DNA from: Macrostomum lignano
Lineage: Eukaryota
Direction: 5' to 3'
Assembly: GCA_002269645.1 (NCBI GenBank)
Contig: NIVC01004412.1
Location: 1 to 46,807, forward strand
DNA length: 46,807 nucleotides
A program made the translations under genes and the position numbers. The notes below the pieces were generated by a model, which was not told where the DNA came from, did not search any database, and saw nothing but the letters and a program-made list of their open reading frames with translations. Positions 12,989-46,462 of the stretch are shown piece by piece; positions within the stretch are counted from its first letter, which is position 1, and each line of letters opens with the position of its first letter.

Positions 12989-13021
<33 letters not shown>

Positions 13022-13054
13022 CTAAGACACTAAGACAGACAGACAGACACACTA

Positions 13055-13090
<36 letters not shown>

Positions 13091-13154
13091 TCGCAGACAG
13101 ACAGACAGACAGACAGACAGACACTAAGACAGACAGACAGACAGACAGACACTA

Positions 13155-13202
<48 letters not shown>

Positions 13203-13206
13203 TCGC

Positions 13207-13243
<37 letters not shown>

Positions 13244-13288
13244 CTAAGACAGACAGACAGACAGACACTAAGACAGACAGACAGAGAC

Positions 13289-13339
<51 letters not shown>

Positions 13340-13366
13340 TAGATAGACAGACAGACAGACAGAGAC

Positions 13367-13397
<31 letters not shown>

Positions 13398-13400
13398 GAC

Positions 13401-13435
<35 letters not shown>

Positions 13436-15782: not shown

Positions 15783-16084
15783 ATCTGCGACACTGACAGT
15801 TTAGCAGTGATCGACTGCGCTGAGGACTGCTGACTGAATGCTGGATTTGATGCTCCATTTAATGTCCTTTTCTTCCTGCACTGAGCCCGTGCGGCCAGGC
15901 CATTCTTTCATTGGTTTTTACTAATCTATGTTTATTTTTTATATCGATAATTCCCCTTTAACCCTACAGTATCTGCATGCTGCGTTTGCCCATGTTGAAG
16001 GTCAGCATGCGCCAGCTCCAGCGCTGCTGTTAAAAGGATGTAGTTTTGTGGGATTGTGGGTCCCGTCTGTATTTTCTGACCTCT

Positions 16085-17925: not shown

Positions 17926-18300
17926 TACCACAGCAGCGTGAACTGGTGTACTCGCTCACTTTATGAGTGTCATTGACCTTTGAAATAAAAAGTTAATGCC
18001 TGCGTTGCTCCGTCCCTGTGCAGCAAAAAATCGTCGGGGGGGTTGGCGTAAATCTCCCCCTTGTAGTTTTGTTAATCAGCCCTCCCGTTCCTTGCTTTAC
18101 CTCTGCAAAACTAAAAAGACTTGTCTATGGCGGAACCAACCCTTCTACATGTAGTTCTTTCTAGCTGAAATAAACTTTTGAGCTCAAAGCGTTCGTCGAG
18201 GAAGATTCGTGCTCGGGGAATTTCCATTTCCATCGGCAACGGAGTTCGAACGAAGCAGCTCGGTGGAACCAGAGCTGAGCGGCTGTTTGAAGCAGCTGGA

Positions 18301-24717: not shown

Positions 24718-27186
24718 ATGAATGCTCGACACCTGCTGGCTGGGGGTAAGTAAACCTGAGCTTTGGCTTCTCAACGACAACAAGTATCTGTACGAGCACC
24801 TGCCGGTAACCTGCTTTAAATCCTAATTTTCCGATCCCCAGCCATCATTCTGGCGCTCCTGCAAGCTGCCGCGCCGAAAACTACCAGTGCTACGACAACA
24901 ACGGCTGGTACAAAAAACTCACCTACCAGTGCTACGACAACAACGGCTGGTACAAAAAGCTCACCTACCAGTGCTACGACAACAACGGCTGGTACAAAAA
25001 GCTCACCTACCAGTGCTACGACAACAACGGCTGGTACAAAAAGCTCACCTACCAGTGCTTCGACAACAACGGCTGGTACAAAAAGTTCACCTACCAGTGC
25101 TACGACAACAACGGCTGGTACAAAAAGCTCACCTACCAGTGCTACGACAACAACGGCTGGTACAAAAAGCTCACCTACCAGTGCTACGACAACAACGGCT
25201 GGTACAAAAAGCTCACCTACCAGTGCTACGACAACAACGGCTGGTACAAAAAGCTCACCTACCAGTGCTACGACAACAACGGCTGGTACAAAAAGCTCAC
25301 CTACCAGTGCTACGACAACAACGGCTGGTACAAAAAGCTCACCTACCAGTGCTACGACAACAACGGCTGGTACAAAAAGCTCACCTACCAGTGCTTCGAC
25401 AACAACGGCTGGTACAAAAAGCTCACCTACCAGTGCTTCGACAACAACGGCTGGTACAAAAAGCTCACCTACCAGTGCTACGACAACAACGGCTGGTACA
25501 AAAAGCTCACCTACCAGTGCTACGACAACAACGGCTGGTACAAAAAGCTCACCTACCAGTGCTACGACAACAACGGCTGGTACAAAAAGCTCACCTACCA
25601 GTGCTACGACAACAACGGCTGGTACAAAAAGCTCACCTACCAGTGCTACGACAACAACGGCTGGTACAAAAAGCTCACCTACCAGTGCTACGACAACAAC
25701 GGCTGGTACAAAAAGCTCACCTACCAGTGCTACGACAACAACGGCTGGTACAAAAAGCTCACCTACCAGTGCTACGACAACAACGGCTGGTACAAAAAGC
25801 TCACCTACCAGTGCTTCGACAACAACGGCTGGTACAAAAAGCTCACCTACCAGTGCTACGACAACAACGGCTGGTACAAAAAGCTCACCTACCAGTGCTA
25901 CGACAACAACGGCTGGTACAAAAAGCTCACCTACCAGTGCTTCGACAACAACGGCTGGTACAAAAAGCTCACCTACCAGTGCTACGACAACAACGGCTGG
26001 TACAAAAAGCTCACCTACCAGTGCTACGACAACAACGGCTGGTACAAAAAGCTCACCTACCAGTGCTACGACAACAACGGCTGGTACAAAAAGCTCACCT
26101 ACCAGTGCTACGACAACAACGGCTGGTACAAAAAGCTCACCTACCAGTGCTTCGACAACAACGGCTGGTACAAAAAGCTCACCTACCAGTGCTACGACAA
26201 CAACGGCTGGTACAAAAAGCTCACCTACCAGTGCTACGACAACAACGGCTGGTACAAAAAGCTCACCTACCAGTGCTACGACAACAACGGCTGGTACAAA
26301 AAGCTCACCTACCAGTGCTACGACAACAACGGCTGGTACAAAAAGCTCACCTACCAGTGCTACGACAACAACGGCTGGTACAAAAAGCTCACCTACCAGT
26401 GCTACGACAACAACGGCTGGTACAAAAAGCTCACCTACCAGTGCTTCGACAACAACGGCTGGTACAAAAAGCTCACCTACCAGTGCTACGACAACAACGG
26501 CTGGTACTAAAAGCTCACCTACCAGTGCTACGACAACAACGGCTGGTACAAAAAGCTCACCTACCAGTGCTACGACAACAACGGCTGGTACAAAAAGCTC
26601 ACCTACCAGTGCTTCGACAACAACGGCTGGTACAAAAAGCTCACCTACCAGTGCTACGACAACAACGGCTGGTACAAAAAGCTCACCTACCAGTGCTACG
26701 ACAACAACGGCTGGTACAAAAAGCTCACCTACCAGTGCTTCGACAACAACGGCTGGTACAAAAAGCTCACCTACCAGTGCTACGACAACAACGGCTGGTA
26801 CAAAAAGCTCACCTACCAGTGCTACGACAACAACGGCTGGTACAAAAAGCTCACCTACCAGTGCTACGACAACAACGGCTGGTACAAAAAGCTCACCTAC
26901 CAGTGCTACGACAACAACGGCTGGTACAAAAAGCTCACCTACCAGTGCTACGACAACAACGGCTGGTACAAAAAGCTCACCTACCAGTGCTACGACAACA
27001 ACGGCTGGTACAAAAAGCTCACCTACCAGTGCTACGACAACAACGGCTGGTACAAAAAGCTCACCTACCAGTGCTACGACAACAACGGCTGGTACAAAAA
27101 GCTCAATTAAGTCGGCGACTGAGCTGCGATCCACCTTCCTGTCGGTAGTTCTGGCGCTGGTGTTCAACTTTGCTAATACCCGCTGA
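24718..27186 (+). CDS. Mucin-like Thr/Ser-rich secreted or GPI-anchored protein, 53 x 14-aa repeat, about 790 aa
   Basis: Exon 1 24718-24745 (MNARHLLAG + g / gtaagt); exon 2 24842-27186 (cccag acceptor). Joined: MNARHLLAGAIILALLQAAAPK-(PTSATTTTAGTKSS)x53-IKSATELRSTFLSVVLALVFNFANTR*. Signal-like N-terminus and hydrophobic C-terminus lie in the same frame. Confidence 0.82.
24880..27105. repeat. 42-bp coding tandem repeat, 53 copies
   Basis: Unit cctaccagtgctacgacaacaacggctggtacaaaaagctca; 2226 bp / 42. Confidence 0.95.
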
Positions 27187-27395
27187 TTTGGCATCAGTTA
27201 AACAAGGATTGTGACAGGATGTGCAGTCAGTTCAGTAACATTTATATTTTTTGGATTCAAATATTCCTTACATCCTTCAAGATGTAGCAAAATTAAGTCA
27301 GTGATTATTTGCAAGTGCAATCAGACATACAAATACACGGGACAAATCTACTAAATCAGTTTTCGTAGCAAGCAAGAACCTCAGATTGAATAACT

Positions 27396-27401: not shown

Positions 27402-27761
27402 GGAAGTATACATAACATAATACTTCTCTTACGATTCTTGAAGAAAATGCCCTAGTTGCCGAAAGCAAATAATGTTGTTAATAAAGTACAAAATGTTGAC
27501 TAAAAGGAGACTGTAAAACCGAGATGGTAAACTCAAAGTTGAGCCCAGCGACGCCATGAGGGTCGTGTCGGCGTTTGTTGCATGTAGCAATGGTGGGGTT
27601 TTGCGACGGAAGAATGGAACCAGGCCATAGTCTAACAACAGATATTGATATGTGGAGGTCAACCGTTATAGAGTAAAGCGAATGGCGTAAATTTAATTGT
27701 TAAATTTAACTATTTATGGTTTGATTGCAGTTAAAAACGCTCAATTACCTTGTACATCAAG

Positions 27762-29545
27762 TAAGGTGAGCAGCAGGACGTCCTGAACAGGTTGGGGGCA
27801 GTAGCCCTCGGCCCGGATCACGTGGCCCGCCAGTTGAAGTCGCCGCCGGCGCAGGATGGTGGACGGGCGCTGCAGCTTGGCCCGATCGTACAGGGCCTCG
27901 GCCCTGACTCTCTCGTCAGTTCGAAAGGCCGCACGGAGCAGCCCTGAGTGCCCCGAGTCCAACTGTCGCTCCAGCGTAGCCATAAGCGTCCACGTCTCGG
28001 CGTTGTAGAGCAGGACGGTTTCGACCACCGCCTGCCACAGCCGAGCCCTCTGGCGGTCGCTCTGCGCTTCGACTGGAGTACGGCTGGGATCAAATGGAAG
28101 ACCGCCCAGGCAAGTCCTCTGCGCCGCTGGAGGTCCTCCTCCACGTGACACCAGACCGCCGAGGTAGGTGAACCGGTGGTAGCGTGCGAGCTTGATTATC
28201 TGCCCGCCTGATGTTTTCCGAGCGAACAGCACAATGTCCTCCGTGGGGACTGGTCTGGTGCAGAAGTCCTCCTTAGCTGGGAGCGGCGTGTCCAGTGGGA
28301 GTGCAAAACTGGCGTGCAGCGGCGACGCGGGTGCGTTCACGATGCTGGCGAAGAAGTTGCGCAATTTGTTCCTGCGCTCCTCCGGGGTGTCGCCGGCCAG
28401 GTTCAGCGCCACGCGCTTTTTTCGCCCCGTCAGAGTCTGGACGGCCGTCACCACTTCGCGGCTCTTCACGTCAGGGCCGGCTGCAGTGATGGATCTGACG
28501 GCGTCGTCGACAGTTGGCCTGCTACCGCTCGTCTAGAAGGCACTCAAACGCGTCTTCAGCGTCGCGTGTGGGCCGCCGGTTTCTGCGGAGTCGCTCGATA
28601 TTGAGCCGTGCTTTCCTGATAGTCGGGTCGCTCTGCCAGACAGGCAGCGATTTTTGCGCTGGCCGCATCAGCGTGACTGTCTGCTTCGCGGTGGCTCTAA
28701 CGGCGGTGCTGATGTCGGAATACTCCGCTTCGCGCTGGTCTCCAAGCGCGGTGACGAAGGCACCCGCGAATTGACGCTTCACGCGGGTGTCCAACAGAGC
28801 GCGATAGTAGCGCCGTGGCCGCTGCTTTGGCGGTCGGTAGAGCTGGTCGCGGAGCTGCAAGTCGCAGAGCAGAAGTCGATGGTCTGACCGAAGAGCCAGT
28901 GGAGCCATGGTGTCGCAGCTGGTGTTGGTGACGCTGCGGCGCTCACGAGTGCGAACCAGCGCATGATCGAGTTGCGCCAGTCTCCTCGTAGCGTTCCGCC
29001 CGCGTGCGTTCCGTCGCCTTCTCTTGCAGCCCGCAAAAGTGACCAGGCGGGCAAGGGGCTTGCGGAACTGGGTGTTTGCGGACACCAGGTCCAGCCGGTC
29101 AAGCAGGTTCTCCAGTGCATCGGTGTTGGCGTTCTCGCGTCCCCCGACAAAGGGCGAGCGCTCGGACCTCCGCGGGACTGCGTTCAGGTCTCCGAGCACC
29201 GCCAGCGTGTCGCGGTTTGGCACCTCTTCTAGCTGCCCAGCCAGGAAGTTGAAGAAGGTACGAGCCTCCTCGGGGTGAACAGCGGTGGGTGCATACACGC
29301 AGAGCAGCCGAATGCAGCGGCCACGCAGGCGCAGGTCGACCCGCATCAGTCGCGGGGACAGCGAGATGCAATGCACGCTCTGCACGCTCTGCGACACCGA
29401 CCCGGCCGCGGTCGTTTGCCGGCGTATACAGGAGGCTCCAGCCGGCTCCGAGGTCCTCAGAGTGGAGCCCCGGCTCAGCTACGATAGAAACCTCCTGCAG
29501 CCTGATGAAGTCCAGCTGTAGGTCGTGGGCCATCATAATGCGACA
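27762..29545 (-). mobile_element. RTE-like non-LTR retrotransposon, internally deleted copy (APE endonuclease + C-terminal region, RT core missing)
   Basis: LDFIRLQEV, LLCVYAPT, VLGDLNA and QLDHALV are APE motifs. After RKTSGG the sequence jumps to RFTYLGG...LLYNAETW...RRRRLQLAGHVIR. Frameshifted. Confidence 0.85.
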
Positions 29546-29634
29546 CCAAGGGGCTTTCAGAGTTCGGACCACTTCAAAAAATATACTACAGTTGTCCTTG
29601 GATAAACGATTAGAAGAAACACAAGCGAATATCT

Positions 29635-30990
29635 CGGCTGGAGCCTCCTGTATACGCCGGCAAACGACCGCGGCCGGGTCGGTGTCGGCGTGCTGATCGA
29701 ACCGCGCCTCCAGCAGAGCGTGCATTGCATCTCGCTGTCCCCGCGACTGATGCGGGTCGACCTGCGCCTGCGTGGCCGCTGCATTCGGCTGCTCTGCGTG
29801 TATGCACCCACCGCTGTTCACCCCGAGGAGGCTCGTACCTTCTTCAACTTCCTGGCTGGGCAGCTAGAAGAGGTGCCAAACCGGAACACGCTGGCGGTGT
29901 TCGGAGACCTGAACGCAGTCCCGCGGAGGTCCGAGCGCTCGCCCTTTGTCGGGGGACGCGAGAACGCCAACACCGATGCACTGGAGAACCTGCTTGACCG
30001 GCTGGACCTGGTGTCCGCAAACACCCAGTTCCGCAAGCCCCTTGCCCGCCTGGTCACTTTTGCGGGCTGCAAGAGAAGGCGACGGAACGCACGCGGGCGG
30101 AACGCTACGAGGAGACTGGCGCAACTCGATCATGCGCTGGTGCGACGCCATGGCTCCCCTGGCTCTCCGGTCAGTCCATCAACTCCTGCTCTGCGACTTG
30201 CGGCTCCACGACCAGCTCTACCGACCGCCACAGCAGCGGCCACGGAGCTACTATCGCGTGAACGCATCGTGAACGCTCCCGCGTCGCCGCTGCCCGCCAG
30301 TTTTGCGCTCCCACTGGACACGCCGCTCACAGCTGAGGAGGACTTCTGCACCAGCGCAGTCACAACGGAGGACGTTGTGCTGTTCGCTCGGAAAGCACTA
30401 GGCGGCGAGGCGCTCGGTCCCGACGAATTCCTCCCAGGTCACAGGCGTCATGAGCTGCGTGTCCCTGCGCCCACCGAGTGGTCCGTCGCACATATCGTGC
30501 CAATTCCGAAGAATGCAGGGACAACGCGGAAAGAAGACCACTGCGGGATCTCGCTGATGTCCTGCACCGCGAAGCTCTTCAATCGGCTGCTGCTCGATCG
30601 CCTGCAGTCAGTGCTGGACCGTCACTGCGGTACGAGCAGAACGCATTCATCAGTCTGCACTTAATATTGTCTTCGTTGACTTTTGACTCGGTGTTCATAG
30701 TCTTCCTTCCCTTCGTCCTTTGAGCCTACCGGGTCCCGCAGCAGCTAATCGACGCTGTCATGGCACTGTATTGCGACACCCGAGCTGCTGTGGTGACGGT
30801 AGACGACCTGTCTGACCTGTTCGACCCCTCATCAGGGGTTCTGAAGGGTGACACGCTAGCGCCGTTCCTCTTTGTGTTGCTGCTGGACTGAGTGCTTCGG
30901 ACCGCGACACTGCCCATGCGCCGCTCTCAGGCTCAGGGGCATAGCCAAGGGGGACACCGGAGACGCTAACATCGGCGATAGATTGATGCA
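29635..30990 (+). mobile_element. RTE-like non-LTR retrotransposon, second defective copy (APE + fragmented RT)
   Basis: Same APE motifs; RT pieces EWSVAHIVPIPK, CGISLMSCTAKLFNRLLLDRL and GVLKGDTLAPFLFVLLLD*, with deletions and a stop. Confidence 0.85.
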
Positions 30991-31545
30991 TGTCTCCCCT
31001 GACGTGAATCCTGGCTACGCGCCTGCTCAGGCTCTGCGGCGCGCCATCTGACGCGCCCTGCTCTACCTGTTACCTTGCATTCGGGGCTGCCTATTTTTGT
31101 TGCTGTTGTTGTATATAGTGGTTCCTTGCGGCCCGCAAAACATTTTTAAATAGGCTTTAGTTTAAAACAAAGTTAATCTTGTTAAAGTAGTTTTTATGAG
31201 CTAAAGTGATTTTAAGATGGCAAATTTTAGTTAAAAAATCTTAAATACATTGAAAATTTGTGCGAAGAACTGACTAAAGAGTAGTATTTTAAAATATTAT
31301 ACAGATGATTTTCTGTATATATACCATTCTAGCTATAGCACGTGTGTTGTGCTTATAGTTAGCAAATCAATACATTGAATGGTTTGTTTATATTGTTTGC
31401 ATCTGTAACTGTTTATCATTTCGCATTAAGAACCTACTGTTGTAGCAAATAATTAACCGCCGACATAAAAAGGTGTTTCTTTCGCAGGTTTCCTAAACCT
31501 TCTAGTTTTAATTAAACCGTGACAGTAAAAAGTCAAATCCAACAA

Positions 31546-31679
31546 ATGGAGAATCAATGGGAGCTAGATAAAGAAAATGTTCAACACGCAAAAGGAGGAA
31601 GGTCGGTAGAGCAATTAAATTTAAGTCTTGCCCAGAGTCACTCTGAAGACCACCAAAAATATTTAAAAAACAAAAGACA
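31546..31679 (+). CDS. BUB1: BUB1/BUBR1 exon 1 (KEN box at 31570-31578)
   Basis: WELDKENVQ resembles the BubR1/Mad3 KEN1 motif; donor gtaagt at 31680. Confidence 0.85.
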
Positions 31680-34600
31680 GTAAGTTATTCTGCTTTTCTT
31701 ATACTAATCCTTTTTTTTGTAAGACCTTGAGTTATGTCAGGTTTGGACATATCATGACACTATCCAGGCGCTATCATATTGATTAATTGGTCTAAAATTT
31801 GCTAAAATGATTCATTTGAATCACTTAGGCAAATGTGTATCTTATGCTTCAATTAAGTGATATAATTTCTTTAAAATTAGGCCCCTATTAACTAATTAAA
31901 GCATTTATGTATATTCTACAATACAATTTTAACCAAAACAATATTTTAATTTATTAATATTCATAAACCAATTCAATATAGAAATATCCACCTTAAATTC
32001 AACTTAAGGCATTGAGTTTTAATTCTATTTTCAATTCTAAATTTGATATTAGATTTCCTACATTGGGCTGAACTTGAGCTTAAAGTCTATTTAATGCAGT
32101 TTCAATGGTAATAGTCCAATTGGTGATTGCCATTATTTTGTAAGATGCTTTTTCAAGGAATTTATAAAGCTATAGTCAGAATATGTATATTTGCCTCTTT
32201 ACTAATCTATGTTAGTTTGAACAATTTATAATACAGTTTAACTAGAAAATTAAATTGTATTCAACAATAAAATATTTGACATATTAATTATTAAATTAAT
32301 AATAAAAAGTTAATTATTATCAAGATATAATATTGACAGATGTAAAGGTTTCCCAATAGATATTTAGACAGACATTCAAAACAATAGTCTATAAGGCCTA
32401 ACTTTTAACAAAATTGACCTGCTTTAACCATCTTTTTAGTAAATATTTATGCAACTTTTGGGCATCAAATAATATTCAACTTATCTACTAAAGTAAACAT
32501 CTTTTTGAGATACATTGATTTAAAGATTGCTTAGCAATATTCTGATTAGACATCACTTTTCTATTGACTGAAATTGTTTCAACTATAGTAGCCTACAAGT
32601 AGATGCTAGTTTAAAAATGCTTTAATTTACTTTTTATGCATGTCTTAGCTTTAAAATGATACCTTAGTACCACCACAAAAGATAAATCTGATGTTGAGAT
32701 ATTGACATTAAACAATGCTTTGCGCAAACTTATATTCAAAAACTTTATTGATTTTTTATCAATATTTGTTCAGCTACTGTGTCCTTGTTTTTAATCAAAT
32801 ATCATCATTATATATTCTAGTCATCTACAAGGTGTATCAGAAAAGTTTTAGGACTGTCTATAGCACAGCTTTTAGGTGCACTGTCAATTCTTTGATTTGT
32901 TGCACACTCAGTCCTTGTATAAATTTATTATAAAGTAAAGAGTAAGCCTCAACCTTTTAGCAATTTCTTTAGTAAGCCCTTTTGACGTTTCAATAATTGA
33001 TCCCTTGTCTTGACTTAATTACTTTTACTTAGCAGCAAGACTTTGCAGGGTGGTCCATAGGCACAGCAGGAAGGTGAGTGTTGCCTATTCTTCTAGCCTA
33101 TGAAGCCCTAGCAAACAGGCAAAGTTGTAGGCTAGTTAGGATGGTGCCTATTGAGGTAGCCATGGCCCATAAAGATCATGACAATGGTGCAAATATCTTT
33201 CCATTTTGGTTTGGAAGGACATTCTTGAGCCTGCGAGAGGGGCACAGAACTGCAGTGTATGATTATCAGCAGATCTAACAATTGATGACCATAGAAGGGA
33301 TAGAGCCAAGGAAATAGCCAGAGCCATTACTCTCAGCAAGGGTGTCTGCCAACTATAGTTCCCTAGAAACTCAGCGTACCCAGCTAGGATCCACTTCAGA
33401 TGACAGTATTGTTGCTACTAGCCAGGTTGAGCTGCTGGGTGCAGTCAGCGACTATTTTGAGGAGTTCTTAGTCATGAGGCAAAGGGCCTATAAGGCTGCT
33501 TGGCTATTAGAATAGATGACAATAGTCTTTCCTCTTGTACTTTTTGTATTTAGCTCTGCAGCCTAGGAGTTGATAGCAGACTTCATTCTGGAAAGGGACT
33601 GTAGAGAGTCAGTGTGCTAGGCATTAGACCCCAGGGCTAGTGTTGTAGCTGTCTTTGATGAATCCATCCATGTAACAATTTGGACCTCATGGAAATTTCA
33701 GTGGTTGTAATGCATTATAGCATCCCATGAGGGGATATTATGGTGACTCTTATAGCTCAAAAGAGGTTGAGGAGAGTTCACTATCAGATAAGATATGGAG
33801 CCTATTGCCATTTCTTGTAAGTCTATGAATGCAGTCTTTTGTAGTGCCTAAGGTATCTTTTGTAAGCTGAGACATACATATAGACATGACTGAAAATTGG
33901 AGTTTTTGATAGAAAACAAGGACATAGCAGCTAAACAAATACTGATAAAAAATCTGTAAAGTTTCCAAATGTGAGTTTGCACAAAGCAATGTTTAGTGTC
34001 TCAGCATCAGCGTAGTCTTTTGTGGTAGTTGAGGTATCATTTTAAAGCTGAGACATGCATAAAAAGTAAATTGAAGCATTTTAAACTAGCATCTGCTTGT
34101 AGGCAGATGAAATTGAAACAAGATTAGTCAACATAAAAGCAATGTCTAATCAGAGTGTTGCTAAGTAATCTTTGAATCAATGTATCCCAAAAAGATTTTT
34201 ACTTCAGTAAACAAATTAATCTTATTTGATACCCAACAATTGCATAAATATTTGCTAAAAAGATGGTTGAAGCAGGTCAATTTTGTTAAAAGTTATAGAC
34301 AATTGTTTTGAATGTCTATCTAAATATCTGTTAAGAAACCCTCACATTGTTGAAAATTTTAAATCTGCCCTGTTATTAAACTGGCTATTACCAAAATGGC
34401 TATTACTAAAGTGGATTATATTTGTTTCAATTTGGGCTCCATTGAATTTAACTTTTGGAACCCCCTAATAAATTTTTATAAAATTTATATTCATGCTTCA
34501 ATTAATTTACATAGAAAATTCTACAATTAAACCCCCATATTTTTATATTAAACACATTATAATATAGAATTTTATGTTTTTTTCTAGGCAGAGCAAAAGT

Positions 34601-37600
34601 TTCATGTATGTATTCTTTGTACTCTTAGAATAACATAAAAATCTAATGAATCTATATTATATTGAAAGATAGACCTATATTGTAAAATTGTTGTTTCATT
34701 TCAATTTATCAATTGTATGGTTTTTACTTATTAACAATGATAATAGATGCCAATTATGTTAAAAATAATTGTTTGTATATTGCTTTTATTAGAATAGAAT
34801 TAGAATAGAAAATATAAATAGTAATTTCTTTTGTTATAATAAAATAAATGTTTTTCTAATATTTGATATTTATTTATTTATTTATTGTATAGCATAACAT
34901 TTGTTATGATTTTATTTTAAAAACTTTTACTCATTATAATTTTAATGTTTGTTATAAATATTCTTTTGTGTATAAATATAATAGAAGACTAGTTTTAGTC
35001 AGATCTGGCATATTTTACATGGGTTAATAGTTTGGCAGCGTGTGTTAGCTGCTTCAAGATTATTTTGTTGCATGTGAGATTGCTAGAAAATGAGCAAGGT
35101 TGCTAGTATAAATAATAATATAAAATATAGCTTTTTGCAGCCCACTTGGGCCTACACACATTGAATTTAATGCACAATACATTTATTTTATTACTGCATT
35201 GGGGCTATTTAGTGCTGGGGCAAATGATAATATAGAAGTATATGGGAAAACTAAATCAATGAGAATATAGAATAAAAAAGTATTTAGAATAAAGTGAATG
35301 CTTTTAAGGTACTGCTATAGGCTAATAAAAATATTATAATATTATGCATTATACCAGTACTGGTGTTGTAAAAAAACTTGACAAAACAGGGCTATTCACT
35401 AAAAATCACTCTAGTATAATGCATATGTAAAAAAACATTTTTTGGGTCTGTTAATTAAAATGCAGGCAGAGTGCCAGCTCAGTCCAATGTAGTCACCATT
35501 GGCCGCCACAACTTTTTACAGTTGCAGCTGGAAGCTGAAGCAGACTTTGGCAATGTAGTTAGTAGGCAAATTTGTCCACTTCTCTGTCACACTTGCTTTG
35601 AGAGAGTCAAAATTGGGGTGGCAAATGGTGCAAGCCTTGGACTCTACTTGTGCCTAGATGACAAAGTCTAGTGGGTTTAAATCCGGTGACTGCGGTGGCC
35701 AGCAGGATTTGTCCCAGAATGACATGTTCTCAGCCAACCAATTCTGCTCGATATTGGCTATGTGCAAATGCGCCCTGTCTGCTATAAAATGTAAGGCTTA
35801 CCAGCCGTGATCCTGATGACCCACAGAAGCACAGTTTCCTGCAGAACAGTCTTGTATGCAGCTGCATTGAGGCGATAGCCCTGCGCAAATCACACAGGCG
35901 GTATGACTACACCATTGGAGGCCACAAAACCAAGCATCATGACTGAGGTAGGGTGCTTGGTGGTGGGCATGCACCAACCTGCTCTGTCATCATTGCTGAA
36001 GCTAACAAATCAATCGTTCTGCTTATTAAAAATTGTTATTAAAAATAAGTCTTTTCATCCGAGAAAATCAAGATTCGACCCCCCGAACTCTTCAAGCTAT
36101 TCAGCAATTTTCTTAAGCGCTCCTGACAAACCTCTCGCTGCCAATCAGTCAGCAGTGGCCGTTCTATTCGACGGAGAGAAGTGCCACCAGCCTTCTTCAA
36201 AGCTCTGGACACAATTGATTTGCAAACTCCAGCCACCTTGGCCACGTCGGACATTTTGGCCAGTGGGTTCGCGGTGAAGATCTGCTTGAGTTCTTTCAAG
36301 TCCAATTTTGCAGGCCTTCCAGATCCTGGCTGTCTCTCCAGGCCTTTACCTTCTTCCAGCCGCCTTCTGATGTCATAAACTGCCTGACTCGACTGATGCC
36401 AATTGAATGGGCAATGTCTGTCACTGACATGCCCGCGTCAAGCAGACCTGACACTCTGTAACTTCTGGCTTCCATTTTTGTGGGCTATGGTCAAGTGTGG
36501 AAAGTTTTAGTAGCCACTGACTCTCAAGTTTATGCACGTTAAGGTGGCACCAGAATTTATGCTGAAAAAGGTCATGCAATCTTTTTATGGTGAAAGTCTA
36601 AAGTGTTTTTTTGCAACCTTGGTATATTATAAATAATGTTGTTATTTTTTATTAGTAAAATTAACTTCAAATTAAATGTAATTAAAAGTTGCATTTTATC
36701 AATTGTTCCTATCAACATTATTATCTCTAAAGCTATGACTATCTATTATATATTTTGAGTATAGATATGTTGCAACATTTTAGCTTGTAACTCATATAAT
36801 TGCAGTATATTACATTCAAACTGAAAATATGTTTATTCTATATAAGTTTAACACTCTTATTGGTTATGAAAATTCCAATAAGATGAGTAGATATGACAGT
36901 CGAATTTAAGGTTTTGATAAAGTGGGGTTAGCGATTTTTCCCCTGGCTGTTCCCTGGTTTCTCCAAGTTATGCAATACTTTCTGGCTGTGATTGGCCCAG
37001 TTTTGAAAATGATAGGCATTAATTTCAATCATCTCGCACGATGTGGATCTTTTCCTAGCGCTTTGATTAGCCGCCGCATCTTTACTTGGAAAGGAGACAG
37101 AAAATGCGTCTACAATTGATTTGCAAAATCTAACTGATGAAAAAGGTTATGCAACATCCCAATGACCTGCAAACCTTCGCGGCTATGGAGTTGATTGGCT
37201 AGATTTAAAAATCCATAATCTCAGAATCGCCTGGGGGCTTATGCCAGTCAAAGAACTGGGATTCGAGTTCCAACTGTCCTTATTGGTCCAGCTGGTCACT
37301 GGGCGCCATTGGAGGCCAATCAGCGGCGCGGCAGCCTTCCCACTCTGAAGTCTTCAGCACGCACCGGCGTCCAGCAGACTGTAGCTTCTGGAGTTCTATT
37401 TGCCGAGCTCTCTTTTCTTAGCCGTGTCACTCAAAGTTTTTTGGGGCCTGAAAAGCATGGCTAAAGGCGTCAGCTTCAGTTCGGATACCCGCTTCAAGTC
37501 GAAGTCGGGCGCTGTCGACACCGCTGCCGCGGCGGGAGCTCCGGCTAGCGACGAGTCGGACGAGGAGGAAGCGATGGACGCCGACAGCGATGATCAGGCG

Positions 37601-40600
37601 GTGGAGGCGTCGGCGTCACCTAAAAGGAACGGCAGGCGCGGCGTTGGCGGCAGCGGAGCTGGCGGTCCATCGCGTCATCAGCGCCTGCAGCGCAGCTTCT
37701 CTTTGGTGCCGGAGCGCTTAGGCCGCTCAGGCCTGGGCGGCTCTTTCCAATCGCAGCGGCGCATGCAGTTCTGCGAGGCCGCTATGCAAGCTCTGCTAGT
37801 AGCATTAGTGGCCGTCACTTTTCCCTTCTCTTTCCTGGTCTGCCTGAAGGTCATCGCCCAGTACGAGCGGGCCGTGGTGTTCAGATTCGGCCGGATCCTG
37901 AGCTCCGAGGCCAGCGGCCCGGGCCTGGTGTTCATCATGCCTTGCATGGACAGCATCAAGCGGGTGGACTTGCGCACTATGACATTCGACGTGCCAACCC
38001 AGGAGGTGCTGACGAAAGACTCGGTCACGGTGGCGGTTGACGCCGTTGTCTATTATCGAATATTCGATCCGGTGATGTCGGTGGTCAACGTGGAGGATTC
38101 GAATCGCTCAACGAAGCTGCTGGCGCAGACTACGCTGAGAAACGTGCTGGGCACCGTCAGCCTCTACGAACTGCTGGCAGGTCGCGACGAGTCGGCAATG
38201 GTGATGCAGGAAACTCTTGACGCCGCCACCGACACCTGGGGCGTCAAGGTTGAGCGCGTTGAAATCAAGGATGTCCGCCTGCCAACTCAGCTGCAGCGGG
38301 CAATGGCCGCCGAGGCGGAGGCGGCCCGCGAGGCTCGGGCAAAGGTGATCGCGGCTGAGGGCGAGCAGAAGGCCAGCAAAGCGCTGAAGGCGGCCGCCAT
38401 CGAGCTGTCGGAGTGTAACGTGGCCCTGCAGTTGCGCTACTTGCAGACTCTGTGCAGCATCTCGGCTGAGAAGAATTCCACCATCATTTTTCCTTTGCCT
38501 ATCGAACTGTTGAAGTACTTTCAACAGCAGCAGCAGCCGTCGCCGGGACCAGACGGCGATAAGGATGATAGTGAAAGTGGTGATGAGGCGCCGAAGAAGC
38601 CCAGGTACACTGTGACGGATGCTGATCGGCGCCCTCATCTGCTGCAGCCGCACTGCGGCGGCTCACCTTCGAGCTGCAGCCGGCCCGTGACCGTCAGCTC
38701 GCCTAGTCGCAGTGCTTCAAGGACTAGCTTCGGCTCCGGCTGTTGAACTGAAAGGGGCGTCCTAGGGCGATTTCCTGGCACGGGATCTAACTCTATAGTA
38801 TAATAATTACTAATTATGCACTGTAAAGAACTTGTGACTCTTCGCGTTAGTCGCCGCAATGACGATTCTGCCTTTATAAACTGATTAATGTCTCCGAAAG
38901 TTCGAGTTTTATACTAAGTTTTATTGTTACTTCATCGATTCGGGAGGTTCCCTCATTGTTGCAAAATTATCCTGAGTACCTGTACTATGTATTGTAGATT
39001 TTTTATTGATATTTTAGTGGCGTATTTAGTGGCGTATCCTTAACAGGCGTAACTTTCCTTATATTATGTAAGTGCGTTTTGCTCTTAAAATTGTCCTTGA
39101 TGTCCTTGATTGATTCGGAAAAAGTACACTGGGCAATAAAATGTGGCTTCTTGTGTTGCCTCCGCTAATTGTAAACGAGAGTTTTGGCTTGAGCTGGAGT
39201 TTACTGCTGAGTCCGTGCAACCCCCGGTTTTGAATAGCCGTCTTCAACATTTTTATTACGAAGTGAAGCCCACTTCGATCAAAGGTGCGCCGCCACCGAC
39301 ACTTGCATCTTAGAACTGGCCTAGTGGAATCAGAAATGACCCGGCCGCTCATTAATTATCCAGCAGTGCTACCGCGCTATGGGGAAAGAAAGATGTGGGG
39401 CGAGCTGGGGCGGTGCCGCCAACAAAGTAATAGATATAGGACATAATGGCAGCGCGTCCAGCTGACTGACTGACTGACTGCCATGCATCTTTCATGTCTG
39501 CTGGGAGGAGTAAGATGGAGATAGTTTGGATGCTGGGCAGTTGGTTGGAGGAGGGGGGAGGCTGGACGACTTGGCCCCATCTGGTTTGAAGCGCAGCAGT
39601 TCATCAAAGTCTGCGCACTGGTCATGCTTGCGCTCTGCTAAAATAACTTTTATTTTCGATTGCTGTCTTGCTCGCCATTTTTTCTGTCTTCTAAAAAACT
39701 ATTTTACTGCCAACTTTTCCGATTCCAGAGAGCTGGAGCTGGCAATCAGGTCCTATTCGGGAGACGATCCGCTTCTGCCTTACATTGAGTGAGTCCGCTA
39801 TTTGTTCTGCTTTTTGGTTTGTCAGGTTGGGTTTCCAGGTCGCGTCCACTCTATGATTGAGTTGTCCGGTTGGGTTGCCTATCTATGATTGAGTTGTCCG
39901 GTTGAGTTGCCTATCTATGATTGAGTTGTCCGGTTGGGTTGCCTATCTATGATTGAGTTGTCCGGTTGGGTTGCCTATCTATGATTGAGTTGTCCGGTTG
40001 GGTTGCTTCTCTATGATTGAGCTGTCGGGTCGGGTTGCCTCTATGATTGAGTTGTCTGGTTAAGTTGCCTCTATGATTGAGCTGTCGGGTCGGGTTGCCT
40101 CTATGATTGAGTTGTCTGGTTGGGTTGCCTCTCTATGATTGAGCTGTCGGGTCGGGTTGCCTCTATGATTGAGTTGTCTGGTTGGGTTGCCTCTCTATGA
40201 TTGAGCTGTCCGGTTGGGTTGCCTCTCTATGATTGAGTTGTCCGGTTGGGTTGCCTCTATGATTGAGTTGTCCTGTTGGTTTGCTACTCTATGGTTGGGT
40301 TGTCGGGTTGGGTTGCTACTCTATGGTTGGGTTGCCTCTTTATGATTGATTTGTCGGGTTGGGTTGCCTCTATGATTGAGCTGTAGGATTGTGTTGTCTT
40401 TCTATGATTCGGGTGTCGGGTCGGGTTGCTTTTACTCAACTAACAACCAAACTTACATTTACCCAGCTACGTCACCTGGACCGAGGAGAACTACCCCAGC
40501 GGAGGCAAGGATAGCCAACTGTACGACCTGCTCAAAAAGTGCATTAAAGCGTTTTCTCAGGACAAGCGCTACCATCAGGATGCCAGATACATTAACATCT

Positions 40601-41996
40601 TCATTGCCTTTGTGAGTCAGACGTATCTACTTTAAAACTGTATTTATAAATTTCCGCAATTTTCAGTATTTCAAGTAAGCAAAGCACTTTTAACAGTTAT
40701 TCTGTAAGCATTCTTTTTCACTGTCCAGCTTCTTTCCAAGCGTGAAAGGCCTCGCAGACTTTCAGCAGCTTCATCTCAGCTGGGCCGCTGCCATCTCAGT
40801 TTCCTTCTATTTTCTATTTTCCAATTCCTGACGCCATAAGCGCCTGAGGCTGTGATGAGGCTGAGGTGGCCGTCTCAGTGGAATTGCTTCTCAAACTCTT
40901 TATGTATATAATAAGAAGCTTGAGGAGCCGCTGCTTCTCCCGCAGCCGTTTTCTCCGCTAAGCTGCGGGATTAATGCGCCTAGCCTGGGCCTGCTTTCAG
41001 AGGCCACTTTCTTAGAAATGGGAAATAGATCCCGTTTTCGGGGAGCCAGGAGGCTTCTCTATTCGCTTCTGCGCCGCTCTTCTGGTTACGCAATCCGATG
41101 CCAGTCTGTCACGTAGCTGCTGCTGCCGGCCCCGCCTAGCAACTGCTGTTGGGAATTGGGGAATTCGGGCCGCGATGGAACTTCGATTGAAGCTTTGAAA
41201 TTAAATTCTTCCCTCCTCACAGTTTGAGCACTGAGCAGACGGTTCGTTTTTTCAGCCTCCTACCCATCTGCCAGCCCCCCACCCCAGCCCTTCTTGATTG
41301 CCGAGGCCACGCAGCGGCAATTGCGATTTTGAATTCTTCAATTTTAAATACGCTTTTTTCCGAGATTGACTCAGGTGAAAAACTGTTATTACGCTCGTGT
41401 TGCACTGGAGTTGTGCTTTAATACAATGCTGGAATTATAAATTACTGCCTGGTTCCCCTCCGCTACTTTCTACTTTACCCTCCGCTACCCCCTCCATTGC
41501 TTCTTACTTTGCCCTCCGCTACCCCTCCATTGCTTCTTACTTTGCCCTCCGCTACCCCTCCATTGCTTCTTACTTTGCCCTCCGCTACCCCTCCATTGCT
41601 TTCTACTTTACCCTCCGCTACCCCCTCCATTGCTTTCTACTTTACCCTCCGCTACCCCCTCCATTGCTTTCTACTTTACCCTCCGCTACCCCCTCCATTG
41701 CTTTCTACTTTACCCTCCGCTACCCCCTCCATTGCTTTCTACTTTACCCTCCGCTACCCCCTCCATTGCTTTCTACTTTACCCTCCGCTACCCCTCCATT
41801 ACTTTCTACTTTACCCTCCGCTACCCCCTCCATTGCTTCCTACTTTACCCTCCGCTACCCCTCCATTGCCTTCTAATTTTACCCTCTCCATTGCTTCAGT
41901 GTTCCCCAGTAAACCGTACGTGTTCTCATCTCTTAAAAGCAGAGCTTTTGTGCTCAGAAAAGTTGTCAAAAAGCATATTATATTGCTGGAGTGCCG

Positions 41997-42155: not shown

Positions 42156-45100
42156 CTGCTTAACAAGGCTGGCAGCGGGGTCCGAACTGCGGAAGAAAGT
42201 GACTAAATTTTTTTGTGGGGCTGGCGATGGCGATCTGGATAGTAACCAAAGCAAACTGGCTTTTCTTAGTTTTCCCTCTTTCTTTTTTACTCCCCTTAAA
42301 AATCCCTTTCAAGTTGAAGGCTCTTTTCTGCCCGGCCACGCGTCTTCGGGGACTGCGCGGCCACTAGGGGGGAGGAACTGGAATTCATCACTTTACCGAG
42401 CTTTCCACTGGGGCTTCCAGGCTGGAAACCCGCCCGATCGCTCTCGCTGCACTGCCTCTCTCCGTTTGAACTGGCTGGCCTCTGATGCTACCTGTTTCCT
42501 TATTTAACTCATCTCCAGTCTCCCTATGGCTCATCATCTCCAGTCTCACCGTGTCTCATTATCTCCAGTCTCACTGTGGCTCATCATCTCCAGTCTCACC
42601 GTGTCTCATCATCTCCAGTCTCACTGTGTCTCCTCATCTCCAGTCTCACTGTGTCTCCTCATCTCCAGTCTCCCTGTGTCTTCTCATCTCCAGTCTCACT
42701 GTGTCTTCTCATCTCCAGTCTCACTGTGACTTCTCATCTCCAGTCTCCCTATGGCTCATCATCTCCAGTCTCCCTATGGCTCATCATCTCCAGTCTCACT
42801 GTGTCTCCTCATCTCCAGTCTCACTGTGTCTCCTCATCTCCAGTCTCACTGTGTCTCATCATCTCCAGTCTCACTGTGGCTCATCATCTCCAGTCTCACC
42901 GTGTCTCATCATCTCCAGTCTCACTGTGGCTCATCATCTCCAGTCTCACTGTGTCTCCTCATCTCCAGTCTCACTGTGTCTCCTCATCTCCAGTCTCCCT
43001 GTGTCTTCTCATCTCCAGTCTCCCTATGGCTCATCATCTCCAGTCTCCCTATGGCTCATCATCTCCAGTCTCACTGTGTCTCATCATCTCCAGTCTCACT
43101 GTGTCTCCTCATCTCCAGTCTCACTGTGTCTCCTCATCTCCAGTCTCACTGTGTCTCCTCATCTCCAGTCTCACTGTGGCTCATCATCTCCAGTCTCACC
43201 GTGTCTCCCCATCTCCAGTCTCACTGTGTCTCCTCATCTCCAGTCTCACTGTGTCTCCTCATCTCCAGTCTCACTGTGTCTCCTCATCTCCAGTCTCACT
43301 GTGTCCACACTGCCGATATGTTGAGTAAACAACTTTACCAAGGCGAAATCTGTCAAGAATGTCTCAATGCACTGTGTTTATGTTAGCACGCAAGCTTGTT
43401 CAAGCCACGGCCCCTGTCTGTCTCTCTGTCCCAAGTTTTAATCAAAATGGGTTCCGAAGAAACTTATCTATTTTTTTCTCTCAACTCCCCCTAGGGCTCG
43501 GCTTGCCTGCCCGACCGCAGACTCTGCAATTCTGGAATCGCAATCCCAGTTGGCCCAGGCGCTTTAGGCTCTAGTGCAGTTCTGAGCTCTCTCCTGGGTG
43601 GCCGGATGCAGGGAGGGGCGAAACTGAACAAGTAAGAGCGGAACAGAATCATTTGTTGGCATTTCCGCTCTCCTTATCTTCCCCTACATCTTCCTGATCC
43701 CCGTGTTGCATCCCCTCTTCAGGGTAGGATTAAGTCGAGGGAGACTGGGCAGCAACATTGTTGTGTTTGAGTCGATCCTGATCGATGCTCTCTCTCTACT
43801 GTATATTTAAGCCTTTAATACTTCAGCATACGGCTATTAAAAGTCTACAGCTGAGACATCATCCTGCGCACCTACCCGTTTCTTTGGGGGGGGGGGGTTG
43901 GATTTTTCTCCCTCAAGATCGGCTGGGGCTTGACCGCGCCACCCGCTCCTAGCCGCTTGAGAGAACCGGCCCTGACGGGACCTTTCTTTTTGGCAGGGTT
44001 TCCTTTTTTCCCTGGAAAGATTTATTCGCTAAGGTCAAGCAGGTTTTTTCTCGCTTTTCTACTCTTTTTCTGTTCAAACCGAAAGAAGATCGAAAGCCAG
44101 CTTTCGTCGGTTACGGCCGGCCGGCACGCGACTCGGGAGGGTAGCGGAAGTGCGCGATGCCAGCTACTAGTGTAGGGCCCATCTCCCCTCACCCGTCTCT
44201 AACTCAGTTTGCCTGTCTGCCTCGACCCCCCCTCTGCCCGTCATATCGGAGAAGCTGCTCCAGCTGCGTCGCCGTCCGCTTCCACTTCCACTAACCCGTC
44301 TTGTTGAACCCGTCAAGTGAAAGCGCGTCGGCGAGATAGAAGGGAAAAGGGGGGCTCGGCGAGCGCCTGTCAGTTCCTTCTCTTCTCCGGCGTTGCCTCT
44401 TCAGCGGGTGCCCTGCGCCTGGGCTGAGGAGAACTCACTGGCCGTTTGAGGCGGGGGGCGAATGGAGCGGTTTTTGGGTGCCGCCCCTGCTGATTGATAT
44501 TGAAAATGTCATCTCTGGCTGCGCTGCTGTCTCCTGTGTGCCGCCGCCCTGTCACCCGCCCCCTCTTTTTGCGACAGTTTTTTTTAGGTCTAACAATTGC
44601 CTCATCGCTGAGCTCAAGCTCGGTGCGATGCGGTTCTATCGATTACTGTGACAGACAGTCAGACAGGCAGACAGACAGACACTAAGACAGACAGACAGAC
44701 AGACACTAAGACAGACAGACAGACACTAAGACAGACAGACAGACACTAAGACAGACAGACAGGCACTAAGACTGACAGACAGACAGACAGACACCAAGAC
44801 AGACAGACAGACAGACACTAAGACAGACACACAGACAGACAGACAGACACTAAGACAGACACACAGACAGACAGAAAGACACACAGACAGACAGACAGAC
44901 AGACAGACATGCAGACATACGTCAGTAGGCAGAGAGAAAAGCCCCATATACAGACATCGCATCCGCAGCGACGCCACACCGTCACACATGTAGGTTTTGA
45001 ATTCACACAGGCTGTTAAAATTAAATCCCTTTTGCTTGACAAATTAATTTGGCCTCGCCAGCTTGCTCTGTATTCATTTGTTGACAGAGCTCGGCTATCC

Positions 45101-46462
45101 ATATTCACTAATTTGGCAGGTTTTGTGTTAAACATCCGAGCAGAATTCTGGCTTACAGTCCCGCCAACTTACTTAGAAAGGGTCAACTGGATTTAGCTGG
45201 GCATTCTGTCCTGCAAATCTGTGTCTGAAACAGGCTCCGCTTAATACCGGCCTGTCCCGACAGAAGATTTATGACCGAGTCGGCTTACGGCTTATCCCCC
45301 TTGGCTGGGGTTGCGACCTTTTCGCTCGGAAAAATTTGGTAGAGAGAAAAAGTTGAAACTCCCCGATCCCCTTGCTGGTGTAAGCCGACTGACTTATCCC
45401 AGTCGCGATCCCAGCCAGTCCACCGTAATCCGCCCACTAGAAATTTGGATTTCATTCATTTTGTCGGTCCCTTGCCGCCCAACTTTCCATCGATTTCGCG
45501 CAGTAAACACAGTCGAGGTTGAGGTTTTAAAAGGCGGCGTCTGCCAGGGATTTTGGACTTGCATCCGGCAAAATCCAGAATTCTTGGCTATCGAATTCTG
45601 GCTCTTTTAGCATTGATACTCGATTCGTGAACTTTTCACTCGTTGTTTTTGTACGGCTTGTGGAATGCTCGGCTGAAACGGGTGGCGGACTGGCATTATA
45701 GTCTGGGGCGTTTCTGTGTGATCTAATACGTCTGTCTGTGTCTGTCTGTCTGTCTGTCTTAGTGTCTGTCTGTCTGTCTTTCTTTGTGTCTGTCTGTCTG
45801 TCTGTCAGTCTGTCTTAGTGTCTGTCTATCTGTCTGTCTGTCTTAGTGTCTGTCTGTGTGTCTGTCTGTCTGTCTGTCTATCCGTCTGTCTATCTGTCTG
45901 TCTGTCTTAGTGTCTGTCTGTGTGTCTGTCTGTCTATCCGTCTGTCTATCTGTCTGTCTGTCTTAGTGTCTGTCTGTGTGTCTGTCTGTCTGTCTGTCTT
46001 AGTGTCTGTCTATCTGTCTGTCTGTCTTAGTGTCTGTCTGTGTGTCTGTCTGTCTGTCTGTCTATCCGTCTGTCTATCTGTCTGTCTGTCTTAGTGTCTG
46101 TCTGTGTGTCTGTCTGTCTATCTGTTTGTCTGTGTGTCTGTCTGTCTTCTGTCTGTGTCTGTCTCTACTAATCTGAGCTTTTGTCTCTACGTAAGCACAA
46201 TATAATTATAAAACACACATGTCTACGCACGCTGACTCGGGTCTCTCATCACTGCGTCGCAGGCTGAACTCGAAGAGTCCAAAGCGGCAGTCACCTACGA
46301 TTTCATGTTTCACCGCGGCATCGGCACCATGGTGGCTTATTTCTGGTACAGCTACGCCCTGGCTTTGGAGCGCAAGGGAGACCTCAAGGCCGCTGGGGAT
46401 AAATACGAGCACGGCATCCGGTGCCAGGCCCAGCCGCTGGACTTCCTGGTCGAAAAGTTCGA
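31546..46462 (+). CDS. BUB1: BUB1/BUBR1 (Mad3/Bub1) spindle checkpoint protein, N-terminal KEN box + TPR domain; 3'-incomplete
   Basis: Exons 31546-31679, 39729-39788, 40467-40611, 46263-46462 (phases 2,2,0,2) join in frame: [19 protein letters not shown]...[72 protein letters not shown]...[19 protein letters not shown]...[15 protein letters not shown], matching the Mad3/BUB1 homology region 1. Confidence 0.9.
32335..34350. repeat. Long diverged inverted repeat (arms about 32335-32800 and 33900-34350), foldback-like element
   Basis: e.g. aacttttaacaaaattgacctgct at about 32400 versus its reverse complement at about 34270-34293; arms align over about 450 bp, roughly 80% identical by eye. Confidence 0.85.
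35360..36622 (-). mobile_element. Decayed Tc1/mariner DNA transposon, maT (DD37D)-like
   Basis: Pseudo-ORF from ATG 36475: HTH region, [38 protein letters not shown], with stops and frameshifts. Weak terminal inverted repeats (gttgtaaaaaaac / gttgcaaaaaaac) flanked by TA; about 1.26 kb. Confidence 0.8.
37194..37320 (+). promoter_or_regulatory. CCAAT-box cluster upstream of nested stomatin gene
   Basis: ATTGG at 37194, 37282 and 37308; CCAAT at 37316; followed by a GC-rich stretch. Confidence 0.45.
37457..38746 (+). CDS. Stomatin/band-7 (SPFH) family membrane protein, intronless, 429 aa, nested in BUB1 intron 1
   Basis: Hairpin membrane segment [22 protein letters not shown], then [100 protein letters not shown]. 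First in-frame ATG is at 37457. Confidence 0.93.
   Translation: MAKGVSFSSDTRFKSKSGAVDTAAAAGAPASDESDEEEAMDADSDDQAVEASASPKRNGRRGVGGSGAGGPSRHQRLQRSFSLVPERLGRSGLGGSFQSQRRMQFCEAAMQALLVALVAVTFPFSFLVCLKVIAQYERAVVFRFGRILSSEASGPGLVFIMPCMDSIKRVDLRTMTFDVPTQEVLTKDSVTVAVDAVVYYRIFDPVMSVVNVEDSNRSTKLLAQTTLRNVLGTVSLYELLAGRDESAMVMQETLDAATDTWGVKVERVEIKDVRLPTQLQRAMAAEAEAAREARAKVIAAEGEQKASKALKAAAIELSECNVALQLRYLQTLCSISAEKNSTIIFPLPIELLKYFQQQQQPSPGPDGDKDDSESGDEAPKKPRYTVTDADRRPHLLQPHCGGSPSSCSRPVTVSSPSRSASRTSFGSGC
39729..39788 (+). CDS. BUB1: BUB1/BUBR1 exon 2
   Basis: ttccag acceptor; [19 protein letters not shown]; gtgagt donor. Confidence 0.88.
   Translation, partial: RAGAGNQVLFGRRSASALH
39845..40420. repeat. 30-32-bp minisatellite (BUB1 intron 2)
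   Basis: Unit ctatgattgagttgtccggttgggttgcctat. Confidence 0.9.
40467..40611 (+). CDS. BUB1: BUB1/BUBR1 exon 3
   Basis: tttacccag acceptor; [13 protein letters not shown]...[15 protein letters not shown]; gtgagt donor. Confidence 0.9.
41440..41880. repeat. 32-34-bp C-rich minisatellite (BUB1 intron 3)
   Basis: Unit ccctccgctaccccctccattgctttctacttta. Confidence 0.9.
41999..42152. repeat. (GA)n microsatellite
   Basis: Directly visible. Confidence 0.97.
42505..43310. repeat. 25-bp minisatellite (BUB1 intron 3)
   Basis: Unit atctccagtctcactgtgtctcctc, about 32 copies. Confidence 0.93.
44650..44910. repeat. (CAGA)n microsatellite with CACTAAGA interruptions
   Basis: Directly visible. Confidence 0.93.
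45730..46165. repeat. (TCTG)n microsatellite with TCTTAGTG interruptions
   Basis: Directly visible; opposite orientation to 44650-44910. Confidence 0.93.
46263..46462 (+). CDS. BUB1: BUB1/BUBR1 exon 4
   Basis: gtcgcag acceptor; FMFHRGIG...GIRCQAQPL; gtgagt donor. Confidence 0.9.

Follow-up and report, generated by a model that had tools for sequence, protein, structure and literature searches.

In Drosophila, 71% of nested gene pairs lie on opposite strands, and in D. melanogaster 71.5% of the internal genes that share the strand of their host are intronless, a bias that has been read as selection against mis-splicing (PMC5174743). In the nested genes of mouse and human, both orientations are broadly similar in frequency and long 5′ introns are favoured (PMC11694760). 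Here, we describe a locus of the flatworm Macrostomum lignano (contig NIVC01004412.1 of assembly GCA_002269645.1, analysed over its whole length of 46,807 nt and called the window below) in which an intact, single-exon gene of the stomatin family stands, on the same strand, within the first intron of a BubR1-like gene of the BUB1 family. We consider it probable that this stomatin gene is under selective constraint and forms a transcription unit of its own, that its lack of introns is ancient and that its nesting came later.

The locus is similar to the same-strand nested genes of Drosophila and mammals in that a small intronless gene is housed by a host with several exons, in one of its long 5′ introns (PMC5174743, PMC11694760). 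It differs from them in two respects, since Macrostomum makes use of spliced leader (SL) trans-splicing and operons (PMC8629364), which offer an additional possible route of expression, and the host is a spindle-checkpoint gene. A first-pass annotation of the window had stated that most nested genes are antisense and had presented the arrangement as exceptional. The former statement holds for Drosophila and only weakly for mammals, in which the two orientations are broadly similar, and the latter has to be reversed: because same-strand internal genes are typically intronless, as in D. melanogaster, an intronless gene nested on the strand of its host is the usual form and is to be expected. The combination of intronless gene, shared strand and first intron is a typical, tolerated configuration, and the locus adds one more case to an arrangement that is well known.

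The BubR1-like host gene

Stop-to-stop translation of the plus strand gives a segment with a KEN box at 31546 and segments of the Mad3/BUB1 type at 39729, 40467 and 46263, which correspond to four host exons (in what follows, a slash marks the exon boundary). Exon 1 (31546..31679, +), the first coding exon, contains the ATG and the KEN-box segment, ends in ...KNKR and has the donor CA/GTAAGT. Exon 2 (39729..39788, +) has the donor /GTGAGT and follows the acceptor ttccag/A, exactly at the coordinate that the first-pass annotation had given for it. Exon 3 (40467..40611, +), with Mad3/BUB1 homology region 1, lies between the acceptor cccag/ and a donor /GTGAGT, and exon 4 (46263..46462, +), in which the TPR-like Mad3_BUB1_I domain continues, between the acceptor cgcag/ and again /GTGAGT. 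All of these sites agree with the M. lignano splice consensus, GT[G/A]AG and CAG (PMC8629364). Joined in frame via GTRAGT donors and CAG acceptors, the four exons encode 180 amino acids, and beyond exon 4 the gene continues outside the window.

The joined translation is colinear with residues 20-189 of human BUB1B/BubR1 (7.9e-32), unbroken across the exon 1/2 junction, and is matched more weakly by BUB1 (8.9e-24) and Mad3 (2.1e-23). The Pfam family Mad3_BUB1_I (PF08311) is matched at 2.1e-36, with 125 bits against a cut-off of 31.4, as scored on a 179-residue join that is one residue off the 180-residue model. The KEN box (WELDKENVQ) is aligned to that of human BUB1B (WELSKENVQ), and its position ahead of the TPR-like Mad3_BUB1_I domain is the same as at the N-terminus of human BUB1B and of yeast Mad3. 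By the KEN box and the best matches, the host is a BUB1-family gene that is BubR1/Mad3-like at its N-terminus rather than BUB1 proper, an assignment that refers to the first 180 amino acids, the only ones covered by the window, as the region of the GLEBS motif and the kinase domain, which distinguishes BUB1, BubR1 and Mad3, lies outside it. The name BUB1, used previously for the host, should be refined to BubR1/Mad3-like.

Intron 1 (31680..39728, +) measures 8,049 nt, is the longest host intron within the window and holds an AT-rich block, a remnant of the Tc1/mariner type and the stomatin gene, whose stop codon is 982 nt away from host exon 2. On this gene model, which is built on homology, the stomatin gene is contained wholly in host intron 1 and has the same orientation as the host. 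Its placement between host exons 1 and 2, already proposed in the first-pass annotation, is borne out by the canonical splice sites, the in-frame join and the colinearity with BubR1.

The nested stomatin gene

The open reading frame (ORF) was listed as 37400..38746 (+), opening at a TTG of the bacterial code. Its first ATG is at 37457, in the context aagcATGG, and the reading from there to the stop at 38746 (+) is the intact frame of 429 amino acids plus stop that had been reported for this gene. This start codon is considered right because the N-terminus recurs unchanged, over its first 13 residues, in the two closest proteins of the database, both from M. lignano. The single-exon coding sequence (CDS) of this MEC-2/stomatin-like protein is thus placed at 37457..38746 (+), on the grounds of the ORF, Pfam, phmmer and conservation. 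Its codon usage is GC-rich, as previously remarked, with a GC content of 0.62 and a GC content at third codon positions (GC3) of 0.74, similar to host exons 2-4.

The predicted protein consists, in this order, of an acidic N-terminal tail, a hairpin, an SPFH core, a coiled-coil region, a tail motif and an acidic/Ser-rich C-terminal tail that ends in SFGSGC. The stomatin signature blocks named in the first-pass annotation were all found again. The Pfam family Band_7 (SPFH, PF01145) is matched at residues 132-303 (3.8e-38, 131.7 bits against a gathering cut-off of 23.6), and in a phmmer comparison with PDB sequences the chains of human stomatin determined by cryo-electron microscopy are matched by residues 101-353 (1.4e-98), a span that includes the hydrophobic intramembrane hairpin with its proline (TFPFS) and the SPFH core. 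A 27-residue hairpin segment aligns with human PCGWILVAFSFLFTVITFPISIWMCIK, and cysteines align with those flanking the human hairpin and with that of human ILPCTDS (IMPCMDS in the window protein), so that they would occupy the positions of the human palmitoylated ones. Further downstream, the alanine/glutamate-rich coiled-coil helix and an oligomerisation motif of the STIVFPLPID type align with human stomatin as well. With a core identity of about 65% to the chains of the human 16-mer structures, the protein should form membrane-anchored SPFH oligomers like human stomatin.

Human STOM is a multi-exon gene, whereas the stomatin CDS of the window is a single exon. The protein has in common with human STOM and the MEC-2-type stomatins of C. 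elegans the hairpin with its conserved proline, the aligned cysteines, the SPFH core, the coiled coil and the STI(I/V)FPLPI motif. It departs from them in its long acidic low-complexity tails, of about 100 amino acids at the N-terminus and about 75 at the C-terminus, and in two motifs specific to flatworms, an N-terminal M(A/P)xxVSF(S/A)SDT and, ahead of the hairpin, (S/G)FSLVPERLG. Acidic runs of 16 residues in the N-terminal tail and 11 in the C-terminal one correspond to the acidic extensions described for this protein before. Its trematode relatives carry the source name ‘mechanosensory protein 2’ in the database.

Closest relatives and selection

The window's own stomatin protein was not in the protein collection searched. 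Its best matches there, and the sole ones to cover 100% of the query, are two M. lignano proteins, BOX15_Mlig033788g2 (P0001; 432 amino acids; full-length identity 66%, core identity 93%) and BOX15_Mlig013819g1 (P0004; 411 amino acids; 68% and 93%, respectively); a literature search on the M. lignano gene identifiers gave no match. Both resemble the window stomatin in their start and end motifs and in their single-exon CDS, as well as in the core. P0004 has, in addition, a 10-residue tail motif in common with it and the lowest number of synonymous substitutions per site (dS, 0.94), by which it is the likely orthologue.

Rates were estimated by the Nei-Gojobori method between the window stomatin and these two M. 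lignano genes. In the core, non-synonymous substitutions per site (dN) amount to 0.05 and dS to 0.94-1.66, which gives a dN/dS of about 0.03-0.06. In the tails, dN is 0.54-0.66 with dS above 1.2, which indicates a looser constraint, and the termini are still conserved. In a dead copy, a core identity of 93% would not persist at such divergence. These values support a functional gene under strong purifying selection, as the first-pass annotation had supposed in calling it functional.

Intronless state of the flatworm clade

The single-exon state was tested at the genomic locus of each relative by the rule that the length of the called gene equals (number of amino acids + 1) x 3. A single-exon CDS was found in all the tested flatworm members of the long-stomatin clade (8/8, from Macrostomum, Schistosoma, Clonorchis and Spirometra), namely P0001 and P0004 of M. 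lignano, P0015 of Schistosoma mekongi, P0018 of S. rodhaini (the same protein is also present on a contig of a second Schistosoma assembly), P0020 of Clonorchis sinensis with its paralogue P0065, and P0028 of Spirometra. Two short stomatins of M. lignano, P0062 and P0067, span instead 12.5 and 13 kb, with at least five exon blocks in tblastn. A neighbour-joining tree of the core places the short multi-exon proteins with the stomatins of molluscs, nematodes, insects and fish, and unites the long intronless ones in a flatworm clade to which the window stomatin belongs. The multi-exon paralogues of the other clade are about 72% identical to the window stomatin in the core.

The loci of the long MEC-2-like clade (L001, L002, L003, L006-L009, L011 and L012) display an N-terminal VSF(S/A)SDT and, before the hairpin, (S/G)FSLVPERLG. 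In the literature searched, no description was found of the single-exon state and the motifs of the long MEC-2-like flatworm clade as a whole.

Judging from these loci, the intronless state is ancestral to the flatworm-wide clade and the loss of introns is ancient. The simplest reading is that all introns were lost once, in ancient times and near the base of the sampled flatworms, through retroposition or conversion mediated by complementary DNA (cDNA), and on the same comparison any retroposition is to be placed before the split between Macrostomorpha and Neodermata. Being inherited, intronlessness is uninformative on how the stomatin copy entered the BubR1 intron and cannot date the nesting. 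The missing poly-A tract and target-site duplication are equally uninformative, because the immediate parent was already intronless.

Nesting in related loci

The conservation of the nesting was assessed from the stomatin side, as the M. lignano BubR1 locus was not retrieved by protein search. By tblastn, which recovered all four host exons in the window as a positive control, no BubR1 exons were detected within 10 kb on either side of the M. lignano, S. rodhaini and Clonorchis stomatin loci, nor in the 2-kb flanks of the S. mekongi locus. There are no host gene calls at the stomatin loci of the relatives, and a tblastx comparison of the window with these loci gave only the stomatin CDS and simple repeats in common. 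The loci of P0001 and P0004 have neither synteny with the window nor alignable flanks. The nesting, for which synteny in related species had been put forward as a check, is not shared with the M. lignano or trematode loci examined and looks like a later, lineage-specific rearrangement.

Transcription signals and proposed working

Between 140 and 600 nt upstream of the stomatin ATG, a cluster of eight CCAAT/ATTGG boxes (36859..37320, no strand assigned) is a putative promoter of the gene itself, of the NF-Y type. The first-pass annotation had already pointed to this cluster, whose eight boxes stand against the 0.68 that the density of the whole window would predict (Poisson P = 6e-7). Its end is 137 nt away from the ATG, and one of its members is a GGCCAATCAGCG box at 37314-37325. 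A CCAAT box about 240-290 nt ahead of the ATG is common to seven of eight comparison loci, all but L002, the locus of M. lignano P0004, whose nearest boxes are at -449, -393 and -73; in the window, boxes are found at -263 and -298. On the other side of the gene, the AATAAA at 39135..39140 (+), noted earlier as lying near 39134, would serve the nested gene as its poly(A) signal; the stop codon is 389 nt upstream of it and host exon 2 is 593 nt downstream, and no second plus-strand copy occurs between these two. The CCAAT cluster and the lone AATAAA suggest that the stomatin gene may be an independent transcription unit.

A pyrimidine tract followed by AG, CTCTCTTTTCTTAG (37409..37421, +), lies 36 nt upstream of the stomatin ATG and resembles a 3′ splice or trans-splice acceptor, or possibly a pyrimidine-rich initiator region. 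In M. lignano, SL trans-splicing affects about 30% of the genes, and the acceptor motif enriched in this species is [T/C]TNCAG (PMC8629364). The M. lignano SL sequence is absent from the window. Two junctions were considered and rejected: a fusion of host exon 1 to 37422 is out of frame and meets a stop codon within about 10-15 codons (an outcome derived by hand for the exon end at 31679), and the terminal AUG of the SL is out of frame when joined either to 37422 or to 39729.

In the working that we propose, the stomatin gene would be transcribed from its own CCAAT-box (NF-Y type) promoter, about 140-300 nt upstream of the ATG, and would use the poly(A) signal about 390 nt past the stop. The host polymerase would read through this unit, which would be removed together with intron 1, and the intronless inner gene would present no competing splice-site pairs; same-strand nestings of such kind would be tolerated because the inner gene lacks them. 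One conflict would be left, that the host transcript is cleaved too early, at the inner poly(A) site; the likeliest way around it is expression of the two genes in different cells, with BubR1 in dividing neoblasts and germline and stomatin in differentiated cells. As for the origin, the gene likely descends from a multi-exon stomatin that was anciently retroposed or lost all its introns, and the nesting would have come later.

Alternative explanations

The first-pass annotation regarded the gene as a functional retrocopy. A processed copy of an intron-containing parent, inserted into the BUB1-family intron in the lineage of the window, would fit a stomatin CDS without introns, the occurrence of multi-exon stomatin paralogues in M. 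lignano, and a nesting that is not common to M. lignano or trematodes, so that either the gene or the host exon must have moved. We hold this to be unlikely, since with every tested member of the clade intronless the parent already was so, and the lack of introns is no sign of an insertion here; the intron-containing paralogues do exist in M. lignano, as had been anticipated, but their core identity of only about 72% and their position in another clade speak against any of them as the parent. The absence of a poly-A tract and of a target-site duplication, observed from the beginning, was also found here: no A-run follows the AATAAA at 39135 or occurs anywhere in 38747-39728, and the sole flanking direct repeat, of 15 nt with 14/15 matches (37367-37381, GCGTCCAGCAGACTG; 39454-39468, GCGTCCAGCTGACTG), is judged coincidental, with about 0.2 such pairs expected by chance (our own estimate) and no poly-A tract next to it. 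An 18-nt repeat pair at 38221/39288 is likewise at chance level (blastn E = 0.33), and no second stomatin fragment is present in the window. Furthermore, the CCAAT-rich upstream region is like that of the relatives, whereas an RNA-mediated copy would normally lose its promoter. That the ORF is silent or decaying and has stayed intact by chance is extremely improbable, given a core with dN of about 0.05 at dS of about 0.9-1.7, conserved termini and no disruptions of the frame.

The use of SL trans-splicing in Macrostomum brings in a dependence on the host, in which the stomatin mRNA would be cut from the BubR1 transcript by trans-splicing between 37421 and 37422 and by cleavage at the AATAAA, in an operon-like, co-regulated manner. 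The acceptor-like CTCTCTTTTCTTAG, followed by CC, is suitably close to the ATG and the gene is on the host strand, but the site ends in TAG and not in the [T/C]TNCAG of M. lignano, and has no conserved counterpart upstream of the M. lignano relatives; a strong CCAAT cluster stands just upstream, a cut at the inner poly(A) site would separate host exons 1 and 2, and the stomatins of the relatives stand alone without a host. We therefore regard this route as quite unlikely, and as very unlikely the stricter version in which the gene has no autonomous transcription at all and is released from the BubR1 transcript by SL trans-splicing at the same site together with intronic cleavage and polyadenylation. 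If the latter were true, a membrane-scaffold gene would be made from the intron of a checkpoint gene, either at the expense of the host gene or in step with it. Equally doubtful is the view that the nesting is not a true one, with the KEN-box exon at 31546 as a relic or part of another transcript and the functional BubR1 mRNA starting downstream of the stomatin gene. The low GC3 of exon 1 and its location in an AT-rich, transposon-bearing block would agree with it. Against it, exon 2 cannot start the protein because no ATG is present in its open frame upstream of 39729, and an SL-derived AUG does not provide a start in frame there; exon 1 has an uninterrupted ORF and a perfect GTAAGT donor in the right phase, its KEN-box segment aligns with human BubR1 and runs smoothly into exon 2, and the stop-to-stop translation of the plus strand gives no other KEN-box exon in the window.

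A constrained, independently transcribed stomatin gene with ancient intronlessness and later nesting remains the reading that we prefer, and some points weigh against it. Exon 1 has a GC3 of 0.33, against 0.63-0.78 in exons 2-4, and sits in the AT-rich block; the join of exons 1 and 2, like the start of transcription and the poly(A) site, is read from the sequence, and the CCAAT boxes are motif matches to which a promoter function is ascribed. Host-driven expression of stomatin is a minority possibility, given SL trans-splicing and the acceptor-like motif. No alignable non-coding conservation was found with the 5′ and 3′ flanks of the M. lignano stomatins. The BubR1 N-terminus had no match at E <= 0.001 in a collection of 5.8 billion proteins, and an unannotated nested copy may exist elsewhere in M. 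lignano.

Surroundings of the locus

The AT-rich block covers 31000-36900, with a GC content of 0.24-0.42 in a window that is otherwise 50-60% GC, and host exon 1 is at its start; a local mutational regime and a recent rearrangement are both possibilities for its origin. Weak helix-turn-helix and DDE_3 matches identify the Tc1/mariner-like element in intron 1 (35519..36437, -) as a decayed, frameshifted transposase remnant. Just upstream of host exon 1, at 27741-30664, there are two near-identical inverted fragments of an element of the long interspersed nuclear element type, 28522-29397 (-) and 29690-30664 (+), with an endonuclease/exonuclease/phosphatase domain. They are preceded, at 24816-27194, by a long and very regular repeat (the minus strand reads ELFVPAVVVVALVG...) with ORFs of 750-790 amino acids on both strands, which, judged by eye from their translations, we take to be an artefact of the repeat and not a gene.

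Host introns 2 and 3 consist mostly of tandem arrays, with units of 32, 34 and 25 nt and microsatellites of the GACA/GTCT type, in tracts at 39850-40430, 41455-41886, 42508-43305, 44650-44917 and 45730-46164. GTCT/GACA repeats are also seen in M. lignano loci and in the introns of the gene upstream, a large multi-exon gene for a UvrD-like helicase (1-16000, +) that has the P-loop GRSGTGKTT, introns full of tandem repeats and a Pfam UvrD-helicase match for 6236-7519 (1.2e-08), and that presumably resembles TRANK1-type proteins. Several unassigned ORFs lie at 18178-19886, between the helicase gene and the repeats, among them a Cys-rich one of 124 amino acids (18178-18552) with no Pfam match. No Rfam family reached its gathering score in the window and no tRNAs were found there.

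Implications

For annotation, the locus calls for two separate gene models, one with a single exon for the stomatin and the other, with a first intron of 8 kb, for the BubR1-like host, and for neither a fusion nor a pseudogene. The nesting would acquire a greater significance only if transcripts showed coupling or interference between stomatin and BubR1 in neoblasts. For the evolution of the family, the long MEC-2-like clade is intronless from Macrostomum to trematodes and cestodes, which points to a single ancient retroposition or cDNA-mediated loss of introns.

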